Positions 12,105 to 60,719 of a stretch of 64,000 nucleotides of DNA are shown here, piece by piece (the first letter of the stretch is position 1; the number at the start of each line of letters is the position of its first letter). The position numbers were made by a program, and so were the translations under genes. The notes below the pieces were generated by a model that saw only the letters and a list, made by a program, of their open reading frames with translations, made no database searches and was not told where the DNA came from. Source of the DNA: Adineta vaga (taxonomy: Eukaryota; Animalia; Rotifera); NCBI GenBank assembly GCA_021613535.1, contig CP075493.1, positions 14,880,001 to 14,944,000 on the forward strand, in the 5' to 3' direction.

Positions 12105-14790
12105 ATGCCTGACCGTCGTGGTAAGTGTATATATATCTTTGTGTAATCAATCTTCGCACGAGTCAAATAATTTTGAAAAAGAAGGCTAATACGATATTTT
12201 TATTAGGCAAAACTATGAAAAAAAGACAAAATAGAGAACAACATAGACAAGAACCTGAATTCGAAGATAAAGGTAAGAATTCTATTGTATCTTTCAAGTA
12301 TAAAAATTGGTTATGAAGGAAATAAGGACTGGATGAGTCCAGTCGAATGGTCACCTGATGATTATGATGAAGATGATATTGATCAATCTTCTTCCGATGA
12401 TTACTATGCAATAAATAATCCTAAAACAAAGAAAAATCGAAATCGTCGACAAAATATCGTTGTACAATCATCTGTAGTTCCCATAAAGTATCCGTCTCAA
12501 TCAAGCAATACTCAATTGAATGAGTAAGTTTGCATCACATCAACTTTATATATTTTGTTATCTTCAAGATATAACGATGAACAATATCTTAATGATCGTC
12601 AAGTACCTAGTCAAATTTTTAAGTGAATAGTATCTAAAGAATAGGAATCATTGATTTCATTGGGCTTTTTTTCAGAATCTTTTCTAAGGTTGAACACAAA
12701 GAAGAGGTGATGAAAATTTTGAAAGGTATCCAAGACGAAGAGGATCGTTATTGTCAATCGAAAGATGAAAAAGTTTGTTCACGGCAACAAGTTATTGAAT
12801 ATTTTCAACAAAGTTAGATTTTCATATCAAATTGAAATTTTCATTCGATACCTGAATTGAACAACTTTTCTAGTAAAGTATGTAGATTTTGAACAAGAAA
12901 ATAGAAAACAAATACTAAAATATTTACAAAAACCAATATTAAGAAACTCACAACATGGTGTTTTACTATTCAATTCAGAAAGACAAGTAATGTTGAGCAC
13001 ACTTATTCCTGTGTGTTCATGTCTTTCTCTTTAGATCTTTGTAGTTCAGAATTATGATGGTATGTGGAATGCTCCAATGGGTTATCGAAAAATAGATGAT
13101 AATTATCAGTTAGAAACGATCATGGAAACAGTTTCACGTGGATTTAATGAACAAATTCATGCTAAACATCAACTCACCGATGAAATATTTGAATGTTATG
13201 ATCTTCAAGATAATCATCAGTTAGATTCATATAAATATATTAAAAAACATATAAATATAGAAAATGAATTCGTTGGATTATTCATTAGTCAATTTGATGA
13301 TCCCATAATTGAATTTGAATTACACAATACATATAAAAATCAAGTAAAATCATTCGATTTGAAGATAGTAATGAATATGCTTATTTTTAAGGTGTGTCAG
13401 TGGATATCAATAGATGATATCATCAATCAGAGATCATGTGTACAATTTGAGTATATTATACTCTTAGACCATTTGTACAGTACGTTTTTGATATTCATTT
13501 CAATAACAGATGAGTTTCTATTAGACATATTCAATATTGCATGGATTTGAATAAAGTCAATTCAAACGATACTGTTCAACAAGGGCCTACGGAAAATAAA
13601 ATGAGATTTCAAGAAAATCTAAATAATACAGTCGATGCTTTCAGTACAATTAATCTACAAACAAGTAACTTTTATAGAATCATTTTGAGAATTAATCCAT
13701 GTATGATTTTCAGCTCCACCAAACACACCTTTATCCATTCGCGATGAAATTTTCCACTCTGCTCAACCGCCTATTGAATTTCAGGATGATCGTAATCAAA
13801 TTTTGGATAAAACTTTTGCCACCATATTAGTTACTAATTATGTGCCCAAGATTCTTGCTGATTTTAATTTGAGATTGAGACTTCCTAAAAGTCATATGAA
13901 TATTCCACAATATAAAAAATGTATCTTCGAAAGACCACGAATTCCGTACTATAAGAAACCAAAAGTGAATTCGATGTTTCCATATCAAGAAGGTCAGAAA
14001 TTCTTTCCTGAACCAAAAAAACTTCACTTCTTCCTCTGTTGATTACTGCTCAACGCAATCAAATTACTATTCAAAATTATGATATTATCAGTGAAAGAAA
14101 TTCACTTCGAAAAATTGCCATGAATAATGAAAATTATGTAATTGGTGTGAAAAGAATTGGTTCAACATTATTTCTCCGACGTCATGATAAACGACTTATT
14201 AACAAAAATGATGTGGGATTTCGTTTTGAACAAATGTGTCGACCTAATTATCATCTCGATGCTGAATATAAACTGTTAGTTGAAGGTTGTTTTGGCAATC
14301 TAAGAACATTAATTACAGCTGAAGCTGATGCAGTCTGTAAACCTCATCGGACAATGGAATTTAAAAGTCGATTAGATTCGAATCATATCAATCAACCAGC
14401 GAATTGTTGGTTATAAGCATTTTTGAGTAATTAAGTTTATGAAATTTATCTGTAGAAAATATGATTTATTTTTGTTTCAGGTGGTGTTAGTACGGTGATA
14501 GTTGGTCATCGTACAAATGATGAACCACCACGACTTGTAGATATTCGCATTATGATACTTCGAATATTGTTAGTGATAATGTGAAAGAAAGAATTTTGCT
14601 TTTTCTCTATCGAGTACTTTGTTTTCTTCGAGAAAATGTTAAACAAGATGGCATTTATTTACTTTCGCGTCGTTATGATTCACGTGTTGGAAAACGTGAT
14701 TTATATCTTTATAAAGTAGCAGACAAAGATAAACAAGAATTAACATTTGTTACAACAGAATTACTTAATCAATTGGGTTTTAACTTATGA
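12105..14790 (+). pseudogene. Multi-exon protein with C-terminal DXO/Rai1 (Dom3Z)-family decapping nuclease domain; premature stop and frameshifts
   Basis: Motifs in order: ISERNSLRKI, VGFRFEQ, ITAEAD, MEFK, CWL*AFLS|GVSTVIVGHR (intron 14427-14480). TAA at 14414-14416 replaces the conserved Gln. Frameshifts near 14015 and 14548. Several upstream short exons start from ATG 12105. Confidence 0.75.
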
Positions 14791-48757: not shown

Positions 48758-51492
48758 TTAAATTATTTGATGGCGAGTATGTTCCATTAATTGTTCGAAT
48801 ATTGTTTGATTTCCACCAAGTAATTCTACCACTCGTTTTCTACCTTTGTTTGCTAAAATTTGCCAAAGTGTCTTACTCGAAACACAACATTTCTCCAATA
48901 TTACTATTGTTAAGATTGTCGTGATTATCATGTGTTGAGTGTTCTTTTCTATCTTATTAAGTAGTGATGATGCAAAATCAGCTAGAGATTTGTTTGTTAA
49001 TTTCTTAACATCATCTTCTGTTAATGTCCATAATCCATCGTATTGTTGTTTTTCTATGAAGCGTTCAACTAATTGTCGTTCATCCGTTGGCCAATTAACA
49101 GCAAGGTCTTGTTGTAACCAATGGTCGATTGTGGATTTTTCCCTTGCTCCATAATTCATAGGTTTTTTGGAAAAAATAGATGAAATAAAACCAGTAAGTG
49201 GTAGAAATACAGAGCCAGAACTCATGCCAGTTCTTTTTCGAAAACTTCCTGATTGACACTGTAAATCGGCAGCTTTTGCTGATAAAGATGAAATATTTTC
49301 ACTCCTTTCTAAAGCCCCATCTATAGTATATTGCATTAAACTACCCAAATCATCCATATCAGCTTGACAAGAGCCACTTTCAAAAGATGTAGATGTGAAT
49401 CCATAGGATTGTGATTGTCGTTGTAATTTTATATATGTGGGCGTAGGCATAATTGATACTTCACGTAATTTCATATTTGCATTACTTTCACTATCGACAT
49501 CGAGCCGTTTCTCAACACCAATAAAAGCTGTATATGGACAAAGAATACCATATTTTATGGACAGATCAATAAATAGCTTTTTGGATGTAGTTTTCCATGT
49601 AGATTGGAGTTCACGAAGAACTGCTTTAGCTGCTAAACGCGTGATCATTTGTGAACTACAGTTTGACATCGGATGTTGAATAGAAACTACACTGATTGGC
49701 TCTTCATGTTCTTTGGATAATAGTTCAACAGTTGTTTTATCATCGAAAGGTGTTGATTCATCAAGTAAAGCATAAAATAATAATCGATCACCAATGAATA
49801 CAGGTGATGAACGTTCAGATACATCGAAGAGAATTGTTTGATTAGTTTTCCATTTTATACTCATATTGGTCAGATTTGGGCGAAGAGCACGAGTCAGTTG
49901 CTCTGCTACATGAATATCAACATTCGTATTTGGGGGAATAAAAGTAAAATGACCATTCGTAGCACGTGCCAAACCTTTAACAAGTGCATGACTAGGCTAT
50001 AAGAAAGAAAAGATCATATTGTTGGACATAGAAGAAAGATCGATTGAAATGCTTACAGCATAACCAAGTCCGAATGAAAAAATTCGTGTATATGCAGCCA
50101 TTTGTTCACAAATTTTTATTACTAGATCGACATTTGATATTTCTCCATCCGTAAGTAGAAAAATTTGTCTCATACGTCCTTCATTTGGTTTATTGTTCAT
50201 AAGCCAAGTCAGTGGTGCAAGTAATTCTGTCCCACCCAAATCAGCTGTCATATTCTTAATCAATGATTCTACTTGATCCATAGTTTTCTGATTGTATGGT
50301 ACGGAAACTTTCTTATCGAAGAGAGATAAAAAACTAGATCCAAAACGAATAATATTGAAATAACAATTGACTGGCAGACTTTTCAGAAAAAGTATCATTG
50401 CTTTGCGTACCAAACCAATTTTATTTTCGTCTTGCATAGAACCACTACAATCGATTATAAAGAGAAATTCATTGCCTATATCACTCATGTTTTGTTGACA
50501 ATCCTGTTCATTTGGCATAAATGAAACCATCAAAGCACCCTTTTCAATAGCAGCAATGGTATTTGGTTTGAACTGTGATAATTCAACATCGATAATAATA
50601 TCACGACTAAAATACGTCAGAATTTTATTAAAAAGCAAATACATTCTTTTTCAAATTAATAACTTACTCAAGTTGAACTCTTTGTTGACTAAAATGAATG
50701 AGAAATATATCCGGATTGCTTATATCAATTTTAATTGAATGTGATGGAGAAGAAACGCTAGTAACATTCTGTTCCAATTTATTCACATGACATTGCAAGT
50801 CGATTGTATACGGAACTGATTCAGCATATTGCACTTGAGTTCCATCTGGGGATGAAATACCTTTTTGATTAGGAGAATAACGTGGTGAAATTGTAGTAGG
50901 AATAACGAAACGAATGATTGATTTTTCATTGCCATGTAAAAGATCGAGCTCACTAACGTAACTGATAGTGATACAACATTTACTCTTTGGTTTCAATCTA
51001 CAGTAAGATTTATGAAGAGGATGTCTTACTATTTCTAAAAGATACATACGCTCCTACACTAATAACAAATATATCATTCGAAGCTTCATTTTGTTCAAGT
51101 AAATAGGCACCATGACCATGCGCCAGAGCTTCTGAATATTCTTGTTGTGCTACTTTCGTTTCTTTAATTTCAGCAATGATTTCACGTTCATTATCTATGT
51201 GAGCTATGAATGCATAGATAGCTGCATTTTCTTCAATTGGAAAACTAGAAAAAAAGAGAATACTAGTGAGAATATCTGCTTTCTTTTACCAATAAACTGC
51301 TTCAATTGGTATGGATTCATCATTTTGGAACACTTGAGTGATGGTAACATCAGCAGCAAATGAATGAATACGAGCATCGATAGAGACTTCTTTTAAAGGA
51401 ACCAGTTCTTTGAAAAGTTCTGATGAAAAAATATTTTCCTTTTTAATATATAACATTCCTGTATCTCGATTGTTGTCTTGTGAAAAACTCAA
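48758..51492 (-). CDS. VWA5A-like protein (VIT + VWA domains), multi-exon, with an R-SNARE-like segment near the C-terminus
   Basis: VIT: PLKEVSIDARI...PIEAVY|FPIEENAAIYAF. VWA MIDAS: IDCSGSM, GGTEL, LTDGE. Also LSIKYGILCPYTAFIGV and QQYDGLW. Exact start codon uncertain. Confidence 0.9.
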
Positions 51493-56627: not shown

Positions 56628-57128
56628 TTATTTGTCAATTGGTGGCTGTTGTAATGGTTTGATAAGGACGTGAGCGAGTAGTCCAAACGGAATACCTATC
56701 AATGCGCCTTTACCAGCAGATAATGGACTCATTTTTGATGGTAATCCAATAAGAAGACCTGTTAGACCACCAGCAATTGAAGATAAGAATGTGAATTTAT
56801 CCACTCGATTTTGATTTTGCGAATAACGAAGACGATATGCTCGATCCCATATTTTATATTCATTATATTGTTCTTTATATAATTTTGCATGCATTAAAGC
56901 AACACTTAGAACAACACCAGTTCCAGCACCAAAAATTGTTGCCCTTCCGACACGACTAAGAATTGGAATAAGTGAAGGATTTTTTTTTGACTTATATAGT
57001 TGATATGGTAGTGCTGTTAATAATGTTACTGTAGATCCTAATTGAAGACCTTTGTAAATACAATGTAAAGTTAGTTCACGTAATGAATGAGGAATTAAAG
57101 CTCGTTGTTCATCATCTAAATCGTTCAT
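56628..57128 (-). CDS. Conserved small membrane protein, DUF1757-like
   Basis: 166 aa with Gly-rich TM helices and WDRAYRLRYSQNQNRVD. Family assignment is from memory of the DR.YRLR.N..Q..D motif. Confidence 0.6.
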   Translation of the reverse strand: MNDLDDEQRALIPHSLRELTLHCIYKGLQLGSTVTLLTALPYQLYKSKKNPSLIPILSRVGRATIFGAGTGVVLSVALMHAKLYKEQYNEYKIWDRAYRLRYSQNQNRVDKFTFLSSIAGGLTGLLIGLPSKMSPLSAGKGALIGIPFGLLAHVLIKPLQQPPIDK

Positions 57129-57456
57129 TGTTGAAAATCACCAAGTCACTATCAATAAATTTTCTATACAAACCGATTTGTCCTACTTATTTTTATCAAA
57201 TCAGTCAAAAAAGAAAAAGAAAAGTGCTTTCAATATCATCGTTTTCGAGTCGTTAGTTGGAGAACGAATCACAAATGATTATTTTCTTATACAAACTAGA
57301 GTTTATCAGCTTGTATACAAGTGACATCTATGACATACTGAAAGGAATTGGTATTAGTGTAGGAGTGAGGGTTAGAGTGTTGGTAGAGAGAGAGTATTCA
57401 TGTCTATATTTTCAAAATCGATATAGTAAAATTGCAGTCATTCAGTTCAAGCGAGA

Positions 57457-60171
57457 TTAGTCGTATGACAACATCACATAGTTCATATTGGGTTTTGTTT
57501 TGTCACGATCAGTCCAATTATACACAATTTCTTCACGTATTTTACGCGATTTAGTTATTGTATTGCCTTGATATAGTATTCTCACTAATACATTTCTTGT
57601 AAAACAGTCTTGTTTGTTTTGAACAGAATAAGTTATACGTAATTTCGGCCAGTTCAACGTTTTGTTCCATTGAATAATGAAATCACATGGAAATTCTGAA
57701 TTCATTGTTCGAACTAACTCGTATGGTGGCTCAGAAACACGTATAGCACTCTTGGGATATTCAGGATTAATATTGAATGAAACACTCTCAATCATATTTT
57801 TCGTTTTACATCTCACGTATGCGATGTATTCGTAGCGTTGACCGGATGTTGATTTACAAGAATTTCCAAATTGTATCATTATATGTCTTTCATTATCCGA
57901 TGAGAAGGGTAAAGGATATAATGATAGCTGTGAGGAAGGAAGATGAAGTTCCATAGCTACAACCAACTACAGGACATTCATAAGAGTTAAGTTTTATTGT
58001 TGCACAACAGCATGAATAACACAATAAATGACGACAATCAGGTAATCGAAGTGATTTAGACATTTCATTGCTATTTATGTGTTGACTACATAAATCACAT
58101 TCCGTTTGGACTGATTCTGCAGCTAGTCTTTGTACTCTACTTTCTTCATCTTCGACCGGTTCAGGTTCAATTTTTTCAACGAATAAATCATTATTTTCAA
58201 CACTTTGATTTTCATATGCTGATAGAATTGATTCTAATTCTTTCGCTGAATATCCATAGAATGGTTCTCGATCGTATGATGATAAATATGAGACTATACC
58301 GCCTGCTACAGACATACAGGCAGGAAGAGAAGGAAGAGAAATCTTCGAAGATGCTTTTAATTGTAAAGATGAAGTATTTGTTGCATTATAATCATTGAAT
58401 AGTTGTAACAACTTTAAATGTGCATTCTGTTCTAACCACTTTGGTTGCTTTGAACTTGCAAATTCATAATAATGATTAGTTGGAATATATTTCCGAACTA
58501 ATCTACCAACGCTAACGGGGTGACCAGCATCATCGATATCATACATCAATAATGCCGGTTGTTTTATACACACAAAACGTTGAGGATCGTGTGAAACAGG
58601 ATCTTGTACAGCTAAAAACGAGGACATCATGGGTTTTTCCACTAATGCATTGAATACAGCAGCTGCTCCTTGAGAAGAACCAACGAGGCAATATACTTGA
58701 TGCGTTGTTGGTGAAATACAATCAACTATTTCTTGAATAAAAGCACCAGGATAAGAACGAATAGTTTGTTTATCACCATCGGAATGACAATAACCTGGGC
58801 AATCGATCGCAACAAAGTAATAGGGAGATAGTGAGGACGATGATGAAGTTGCTAATAATAGTCTCCTTACCAGATCATTCCAATACATTGAAGAATTCTC
58901 CGGTCCAGAACCATGAACAAGTAATATACATTTCTGTTGTTCATCGTACCTATGTCCTGCTATTCGAGCAAATATTTTCCCATAAGAAGGTGTGTGAATA
59001 TAAACTGTACGACGATAAAAATTCTGTACTGGATCATCATAATCACCGAACATTACGTCACTTGTATCTATATTCTTACAAATTTTTTGTGTAGGAATTG
59101 ATGTACGCTGTACACATTTTGCTATTTGAGAATATTTTAATGTACTAAGAGTTTCCGAAAGATCTAAATTCAATGAACTAATATGACAGATCAAGATGGT
59201 GATGGATTGTGTTGTTGATAATGATGATTGAAGTAAACGAGTTAAGGTTGAATCTCTGTAGGGAATATAGGATGAAGATGTTGATAGTGCATCTAATACT
59301 CTTCTCAATTGTAATAATTCAGTATTAATACTGACTGCTTCACGAAATCTATCACCTTCAACTTTTGAACGTGAAGGATCTTCACTACCCGCTAAATCAA
59401 TTAAATTTAAACGACCTAAATAGGATGTGTATTCTCTCGATGATGCTGATGTTGATCGTTCTCTTCTTTCTATCCATATGATCAGTATAGCATGACTTCG
59501 GGATGAGAAGCATTCATGAGAGTAAATGCAGTTGCACGTCTTTGATTACCTTGCATTAATATATTCTCTAATTCCAAACTATTATGTACAGGTATTTCCG
59601 CTGCATCTGCAACATTTATATTACCCTGAGCATCTTCACGAATATTTAAAGAATGTAATTTGTTGTTGTTATTATTCTTATTATCATTCTTTCGTAATAA
59701 ATCGTAGACGCGACCATTATATACTTCTAAATAACTCACACGTACTTGATATTGTACGGATGGAGACGATGATGTGAGTCTATGTATAGCAGCAAATAGA
59801 TATCGACTTGTTCTTGGTATAATTCCCATTAAATCAGCTGCTAAAGATAATTTACCATTCGGACCCAACATTGTATATGTTTTACCACTGTTTGTTTGAC
59901 CATAAGCAAATATGGTTGAATTATAACCATATAATGGTAAATGAAGAAGTGGAATAATTGATTCGAATATATCGTATTGAGTTGATTGTGGTGGAAATAC
60001 ATTATCAAATGATAATGGAGGTGAATTAGGTAGAGTAAGAATTGTATTATTTCGAGAGTATTTGAATGGAATTATTTCATATTGATCGTCGGATATATTG
60101 GGTTTGATTCGAACGAAAGCCTGAATTGGAGATACATTATTTAAATCAATTGATGAATTAGATGAGTACAT
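57457..60171 (-). CDS. Kinesin motor + alpha/beta-hydrolase + RING finger + YEATS-like fusion, intronless, 2 apparent 1-nt frameshifts (~905 codons)
   Basis: Kinesin: GQTNSGKTYT, YLEVYN, N.-SSRSHA (shift ~59507), NLIDLAGSE, IPYRDSTLTRLLQ. Hydrolase: LLVHG, AIDCPGY, VGSSQGA. RING: CDLC...CRHLLCYSC...CPVVGC (shift ~57956). YEATS-like: YIAYV...IESVSFNINPEY...EPPYEL...EFPCDFIIQW. Confidence 0.8.
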
Positions 60172-60719
60172 TGCATATATAGATAGGAGACAACTCTCTA
60201 CAATAGAAATGAAAACAGGACAAACAACTTATCATCGAAGTTCATGCCAGAAAATGGTCTCTGTAATTTTCTTCACTACATGTATAGTTCGTGAAGAAGA
60301 TTTGACAATAAGAAAATGAATAAAATGAGCTCATATGCTTGCAATACTTGCTTTCATACCTATTTATAGAAAACTATATGACTAAAGAAATGTAATAACA
60401 TCCAATAAATAAGTTACGAAATTCATATTTCATTGGATGTTTACAGTGAATCATTGAAAGAATGAGTAATATAAGAAAAGAATATGATGATTGTGTCGCA
60501 TTCGTTAAAAAGGTGTGACATGAAATTGCACAAGTTTTCCTTTGAGAAACAGTTTTTACAATTCTATAAATAGATTTCGATTCACGATTTGCGTCATTAC
60601 TACTAAAATTCAATCCACTTTGTTGATCTAGATCAATCTAAAGGATGATAGAACAAGAGATACTAACATCCTCATCCAAATATTTCTATATTAATGTTTA
60701 TTTTCGTCTAGATTCTAAA

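Follow-up and report, generated by a model that had tools for sequence, protein, structure and literature searches.

A single-exon kinesin gene with a hydrolase, RING and YEATS-fold tail in the bdelloid rotifer Adineta vaga, and its relatives among protists

To our knowledge, no described kinesin carries a hydrolase fold together with a RING finger and a YEATS domain, and the YEATS domains that we know of are almost all chromatin readers. A gene that combines all of these lies on the minus strand of contig CP075493.1 of the bdelloid rotifer Adineta vaga (assembly GCA_021613535.1). It was found within a stretch of 64,000 nucleotides (positions 14,880,001 to 14,944,000), which is called the window here and from whose first letter all coordinates are counted. 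Full-text literature searches for kinesins with YEATS, hydrolase and RING, or with an abhydrolase, found no description of this architecture, and no hydrolase, RING or YEATS tail is mentioned for kinesins by Wickstead et al. 2010 (PMC2867816). Public databases already list proteins of the family, under the names “kinesin-like protein” or “predicted esterase”. Our general reading, to which we give a probability of about 70%, is that this is an intact, transcribed, single-exon fusion gene, whose motor delivers an enzymatic and reader tail. The substrate and the chemistry of the tail are much less certain. By this reading, the gene belongs to a family of eukaryotic kinesins that is old, patchy in its distribution and not yet described, and purifying selection has kept it in bdelloids.

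In the assembly, the gene is divided over three minus-strand open reading frames (ORFs), at 59482-60171, 57893-59308 (frame open back to 59503) and 57457-57966. An earlier note, made from the sequence alone, had joined them into one frame of ~905 codons by two 1-nt corrections, the first of them inside the kinesin switch-I motif.

57457..60171, minus strand: whole coding sequence, with the ATG at 60171 and the TAA at 57457-57459; ~905 codons after correction of two assembly indels; intronless
57957..57958, minus strand: second assembly indel, one surplus base, left out by every covering contig of four runs

At the first break, MNAS is followed by “tct ca tcc cga agt cat”, with a base lacking ahead of SRSH. 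The second break comes directly after the final RING cysteines, CPVVGC. Logan contigs from four public runs (X1, X2, X6 and X19, from four studies) were compared with positions 57300-60400. At 59506-59509, every covering read contig has one extra base in both alleles, placed as +C or +G behind 59506, or as +T behind 59509 with two nearby substitutions. At 57957/57958, one base is missing in all covering contigs (X1, 19.3/19.3; X2, 102.4/102.4; X6, 22/22; X19, 5.43/5.43). The corrected frame restores N-A-S-S-S-R-S-H and CPVVGCAMELHLPSSQ, both in agreement with the aligned orthologues, and contains no further stops. Both frame breaks are consensus errors of the assembly, not mutations, and A. 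vaga carries one open ORF of ~905 codons, the single frame that the earlier note had proposed, in two alleles. The consensus probably failed at both sites because the alleles differ around them. Short introns at the frame breaks were ruled out, as there is no room for them at either site and the reads give single-base indels. The G+C content is 33.9% in the gene and ~31% locally. Loose ends of read contigs on either side of the P-loop region (59893-59928) were also seen, and probably belong to paralogous kinesin contigs sharing conserved P-loop words.

Could the locus be a chimeric assembly, or two adjacent genes, one with motor and hydrolase and one with RING and YEATS, read as one? The protein on record for the locus (P0001) would fit, being only 386 aa long with the hydrolase as its sole Pfam family, and the frame breaks lie near domain borders. 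However, read contigs bridge both the motor-hydrolase (58899-59491) and the RING-YEATS (57818-58092) junctions, and more than 15 independent records, from bdelloids and protists, show the same domain order on a single ORF. We consider such an artefact extremely improbable.

Domain searches used three pieces of the window and the intact Rotaria orthologue P0002 (85% identical), from which all structure models were made. The earlier note had named a kinesin motor without a coiled-coil stalk, an alpha/beta-hydrolase, a C3HC4-type RING and a YEATS-like sandwich, and all four assignments hold. The motor is supported by Pfam matches in two of the pieces and by a complete set of motifs:

59117..60126, minus strand: N-terminal kinesin motor domain (Pfam PF00225 and PF16796)
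59878..59901, minus strand: P-loop GQTNSGKT
59492..59514, minus strand: switch I, N-A-S-[S]-S-R-S-H; the assembly is one base short at 59504-59510, and the base is supplied by read contigs
59381..59398, minus strand: switch II, DLAGSE
59249..59266, minus strand: microtubule-binding motif IPYRDS

Pfam Kinesin was matched by piece 1 (E 3.7e-43, profile positions 43-197) and piece 2 (E 1.5e-35, profile positions 200-325), and P0002 scored 290 bits against PF00225. Switch I is complete once the base found in all read contigs is counted. The best phmmer matches among solved chains were kinesin-5 and KIF4, at ~1e-59. Kinesin-5, -4, -2, -1, -12 and -7 match the motor at 205-174 bits, and none of the named families 1-14 stands out by these scores. 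In the orthologue, Pfam traces the motor as far as residue 356, and the first strand of the hydrolase starts near residue 392. The ~35 residues between them can hold a neck linker, but are too few for a stalk.

The hydrolase part was recognized by both sequence and structure:

58388..59014, minus strand: capless alpha/beta-hydrolase core (AlphaFold2 model of the orthologue, VIA-align to 3bdi, Pfam Abhydrolase_6)
58667..58681, minus strand: nucleophile elbow GSSQG, the same in all of 32 family members
58517..58540, minus strand: acid loop DIDDAGHP, with invariant Asp and invariant Gly-His-Pro
58436..58471, minus strand: strand beta-8 and following loop, YYEFASSKQPKW; expected place of the canonical catalytic His, which no member has there

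Abhydrolase_6 was matched in piece 2 (Pfam, E 4e-6). The AlphaFold2 model of the orthologous hydrolase had a predicted local distance difference test score (pLDDT) of 89.5, and VIA-align gave Z 21.8 to 3bdi (192/207 residues, 2.1 Å) and Z 18-22 to many hydrolases. A HGSGP motif is present in the window hydrolase. Across the 32 members, GSSQG, PV, and an Asp with the Gly-His-Pro-Val that follows are invariant, and PVxH after beta-6 is nearly so. The invariant Asp is the acid after beta-7 (D178 in the numbering of the orthologue part). A feature search of the ESM Atlas brought up nothing beyond generic hydrolases and the rotifer cluster of the protein itself. Judged from the alignment, an invariant nucleophile elbow at such evolutionary depth would argue for catalysis, perhaps with a relocated His, for which His181 and His158 would be the candidates to reach Ser130.

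The two C-terminal domains follow behind a poorly conserved linker:

58100..58300, minus strand: acidic linker, poorly conserved (ratio of non-synonymous to synonymous substitution rates, dN/dS, 0.31-0.54; non-synonymous read variants cluster there)
57959..58099, minus strand: C3HC4 RING, CDLC...CRHLLCYSC...CPVVGC (invariant cysteines; family-profile match to solved RINGs)
57571..57888, minus strand: YEATS-fold beta-sandwich, with FNINPEY at 57757-57777 and RTMNSEF at 57691-57711 (Pfam PF03366, Foldseek)

The RING ligands are spaced C-x2-C...C-x-H-x2-C-x2-C...C-x(2-4)-C, with six invariant Cys. The family profile matched RING1B/BMI1 with E 1e-12, followed by RNF4, PCGF5, RNF168, Arkadia and BRE1, and zf-C3HC4_2 was matched in 10 of the 32 members (P0083 with 28.7 versus a cut-off of 27). 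For the YEATS part, PF03366 was found in piece 3 with 26.1 bits (cut-off 22), and 20 of the 32 members had YEATS matches at E ≤ 0.01. The AlphaFold2 model of RING and YEATS from the orthologue reached a pLDDT of 88.9, and its top 50 Foldseek matches were all YEATS domains with probability 1.00, among them GAS41, Yaf9, AF9, ENL and YEATS2. The pocket motifs are conserved in the family but unlike those of AF9, with INP-x-[YF] for LH-x-SF and TM-xxx-[FY] for SGY-x-GF; INP is invariant across the 32 members. A homodimer prediction for the RING and YEATS part scored 0.00, which speaks neither way.

The gene appears to be expressed without splicing. No splice joints were found in the contigs of any of the four runs over 57300-60400. 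For run X6, whose RNA label is guessed, coverage is limited to 57305-60199, from ~28 nt upstream of the ATG to ~150 nt beyond the stop, and both alleles are present; contigs of two DNA runs extend past both ends of 57300-60400. The X6 coverage looks like that of one unspliced mRNA, if the guessed label is right. Single uninterrupted ORFs are also found in A. steineri (L011:6001-8691) and on a Rotaria-like contig (L013:6001-8745). Together with the joint-free read contigs, they confirm the lack of introns noticed earlier. The public proteins closest to the gene come from Rotaria and Adineta, and the orthologues in Rotaria and other Adineta are 869-914 aa long and 78-85% identical.

Compared with A. 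steineri and the Rotaria-like copy, dN/dS was 0.10-0.21 for the motor, 0.14-0.17 for the neck and hydrolase, 0.12-0.16 for the RING and 0.23-0.25 for the YEATS part, and 0.31-0.54 for the acidic linker. Among 34 substitutions in the read contigs, 20 were synonymous and 14 non-synonymous, and eight of the latter fall within 58119-58294, in the linker. The low dN/dS and the distribution of the variants therefore indicate that all four domains are under constraint. These data also bear on the idea of a decaying pseudogene, in which the frameshifts would be real and the fusion protein no longer made in A. vaga. Two frame breaks in the reference assembly and the replacement of a conserved Gly of a GYG motif by Cys are what such decay might leave. 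Nevertheless, both sites are corrected in every read contig, in four runs and both alleles, and no other stops occur. Furthermore, dN/dS lies at 0.1-0.25, synonymous variants exceed non-synonymous ones, and the coverage of X6 is transcript-like. A pseudogene is thus very improbable.

The fusion is not specific to the bdelloid lineage: the same architecture was found in at least nine named protist lineages. A search with the tail gave ~229 clusters (50% identity) among 1.84 billion representatives, with all bdelloid sequences within one cluster. In many of the clusters the hydrolase begins near residue 370-400, right behind the motor. Named members come from Acrasis kona, Pelomyxa schiedti, Mastigella eilhardi, Paulinella micropora and the diplonemid Namystynia, and furthermore from Ancoracysta twista, Picozoa, the dinoflagellate Effrenium voratum, Papus and the opisthokont protist Lithocolla globosa. 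The family spans Discoba, Amoebozoa, Rhizaria, Alveolata, Picozoa, Ancoracysta and one opisthokont protist. Several protist members have a WW domain between hydrolase and RING (P0081:677-707 and P0079:761-775; by eye also P0076, P0083 and P0080), and the bdelloid and Archamoebae members are without it. An unnamed relative from the clade of bdelloids and Archamoebae lies on an environmental contig (L014, 4398 nt), with the same order from motor to tail in at least three called pieces, which suggests that its gene has introns.

In quick maximum-likelihood trees, of the full-length proteins and of the tails, the bdelloids grouped with two Archamoebae and three unnamed environmental sequences, with 99-100 support in the Shimodaira-Hasegawa-like approximate likelihood ratio test (SH-aLRT). 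Constraining the bdelloids to group with Lithocolla cost 66 log-likelihood units (approximately unbiased (AU) test, p = 0.0002, for a group chosen after the tree was seen). A six-frame search of the 100.8-Mb genome (six contigs) detected no second copy of the tail; it matched other kinesin motors only, and nothing beyond residue 158 of the 536-residue query. The grouping with Archamoebae and the single copy favour a transfer between eukaryotes over a retrocopy. Of the two origins offered earlier for the intronless gene, the retrocopy is ruled out, as the genome holds no parent copy, and the trees, in which the bdelloids stand with Archamoebae and not with Lithocolla, agree with an uptake from a microbial eukaryote. 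In our view, the gene probably entered the bdelloid stem from an amoebozoan-like eukaryote.

Vertical inheritance would explain the gene by descent from an Amorphea ancestor or from the last eukaryotic common ancestor, followed by its loss in the other sampled animals and fungi and by a secondary loss of introns. The family spans many supergroups, the opisthokont Lithocolla included. Amoebozoa are the expected sister of opisthokonts, and the grouping of bdelloids with Archamoebae alone is compatible with such a descent. However, the trees keep bdelloids and Lithocolla apart (AU p 0.0002), and no named animal or fungal homologue besides bdelloids was found in 5.8 and 1.84 billion proteins, among which most matches are unnamed. 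The single-exon structure, and the transferred-looking neighbours in other bdelloids, likewise fit a transfer. Vertical inheritance is therefore an unlikely origin, and a transfer remains our preferred one.

The surroundings of the gene differ between the bdelloids. In A. steineri, the orthologue adjoins a D-Ala-D-Ala ligase gene (L011:3206-4362), and its neighbours on the Rotaria-like contig (L013:899-2431 and 13791-14468) include a GH10 with a ricin lectin and a YrhK-like gene. The neighbours in these two look like transferred genes, which is context and not proof. No flank synteny was found among the A. vaga, A. steineri and Rotaria-like loci, where dc-megablast and tblastx align the gene alone. 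In A. vaga, the gene that follows downstream, ~330 nt beyond the kinesin stop, encodes a DUF1757 protein in a single ORF (56631-57128, minus strand; PF08560, E 5.5e-16). Further away, at 48761-50644 on the minus strand, ORFs with a VWA domain and a synaptobrevin-like match (PF00957, 29 bits) were noticed.

What could such a protein do? We read it as a kinesin of the N-terminal, plus-end type, in which the usual coiled-coil and cargo tail are replaced by a probable serine hydrolase, a probable E3 RING and a reader-like YEATS fold, and the motor would place this tail on microtubules. There, the YEATS-like pocket may bind a lysine that carries a modification, or some comparable mark, on tubulin, on a microtubule-associated protein (MAP) or on spindle-proximal chromatin. 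The RING could recruit an E2 and ubiquitinate nearby, and the Ser hydrolase might cleave an ester, a thioester or an acyl group. The enzymatic activities, the substrate and the oligomeric state of the fusion protein, including a “monomeric” one, are putative.

Two concrete versions can be drawn from this, a tubulin- or MAP-directed enzyme and a chromokinesin-like factor, of which the second gains a slight edge from the histone-type neighbours of the RING and YEATS parts. As a chromokinesin-like factor, the protein would read and ubiquitinate histones on mitotic or meiotic chromatin through its YEATS and RING tail, and its motor would tie the chromosomes to the spindle. The structural neighbours of the C-terminal domain are all histone-reading YEATS domains, and the best RING matches are the nucleosome E3s RING1B/BMI1, PCGF5, RNF168 and BRE1. 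In addition, KIF4 is among the top motor matches, and one family member has an automatic KIF4/21/27 label. On the other hand, the RING similarity is generic, key residues of the acyl-lysine cage differ, and the motor scores are about equal for several kinesin families. A role on chromatin is thus possible, but doubtful.

Several observations weigh against parts of the general reading, that of a functional motor with an enzymatic and reader tail. A catalytic His in the loop after beta-8 was found in none of the 32 members, which extends to the whole family what the earlier note had remarked for this sequence. The hydrolase domain may work as an enzyme of a non-canonical type, or it may serve in binding. 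The RING gave no Pfam match for the window or the bdelloid sequences, which stayed below threshold. The acyl-lysine cage of AF9, formed by H56, F59, Y78 and F81 and mapped onto the family by eye, is not preserved as a whole. The equivalent of H56 is an invariant Asn, those of F59 and F81 are kept as Y/F, and that of Y78 is variable; with Met-x at the positions of G77-Y78, half of the aromatic sandwich is gone. Hence the aromatic cage is not canonical, as had been suspected, and acyl-lysine reading by the YEATS part seems uncertain because the equivalents of H56 and Y78 are replaced. A. vaga itself has GYCHS (58781-58795, minus strand; Cys codon at 58787-58789) where the other aligned members have G-Y-G. 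Since the read contig over 58787-58789 agrees with the assembly in having Cys for the second Gly, this change looks real and lineage-specific. Furthermore, the RNA status of X6 and X19 is an automatic guess, and the donor was deduced from unrooted quick trees with sparse, mostly unnamed sampling and from an AU group picked after the tree.

A more far-reaching version would see here an ancient kinesin family hauling a reader, an eraser and a writer. Its YEATS part would read a lysine, acylated or modified in some other way, on tubulin or on chromatin near the spindle, its hydrolase, with a His relocated to the Asp-x-Gly-His-Pro loop, would deacylate it, and its RING would ubiquitinate either this lysine once freed or one next to it. 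The cassette would have moved in its entirety between eukaryotes into the bdelloid ancestor. Taken in all its parts, this version is rather improbable.

By placing such domains on a microtubule motor, this conserved family points to a link, unexplored so far, of post-translational marks with microtubule-based positioning. Its hydrolase offers a testable case of a triad that keeps an invariant Ser but lacks the canonical His. For bdelloids, the gene is a well-supported candidate for the transfer of a large multidomain gene from one eukaryote to another, after which it appears, by its conservation, to have stayed functional. In practical terms, the reference assembly holds two consensus errors at this locus, and the reference gene model of 386 aa should be replaced by one of ~905 aa.

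Each part of the protein has a described counterpart. The hydrolase shares the capless fold, the Ser nucleophile and the Asp after beta-7 with the CIB-like Ta0194 (PDB 3bdi). Its sequence matches human ABHD14B/CIB weakly (PDB 1imj, E 0.003), up to profile position 170 and to residue 162 of the chain, which in ABHD14B is the catalytic Asp. ABHD14B is a reported lysine deacetylase (PMC9270251) and is defined by an SxSxS nucleophile motif and an HxxxxD acyltransferase motif (10.1101/2023.07.30.551196). Membership in ABHD14B was ruled out, as the elbow is GSSQG rather than SxSxS and HxxxxD is absent. The fusion family further differs from CIB-like hydrolases by its invariant GHP, three residues past the Asp, and its near-invariant PVxH after beta-6.

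With RING E3 ligases of the RING1B/BMI1, RNF4, RNF168 and BRE1 type, the family has in common the C3HC4 spacing and the invariant ligands (profile E 1e-12 to 1e-6), whereas the last ligand pair in bdelloids is CPxxxC. The motor resembles solved N-terminal kinesins, kinesin-5 (Klp61F/Eg5) and kinesin-4 (KIF4), in its P-loop, switch I, switch II and PYRDS motifs, with scores of 1e-57 to 1e-59. In contrast to these, the A. vaga protein has no coiled-coil stalk, and its tail consists of hydrolase, RING and YEATS. Finally, the YEATS part has the same beta-sandwich as the readers GAS41/YEATS4, Yaf9, AF9, ENL and YEATS2 (template-modelling score 0.6-0.69, normalised to the target), and the motifs V-x-F-x-[IL]-x-P and P-P-[FY] that it shares with them are conserved throughout the fusion family. 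The readers sit in chromatin complexes, whereas the domain of the fusion family sits on a kinesin.

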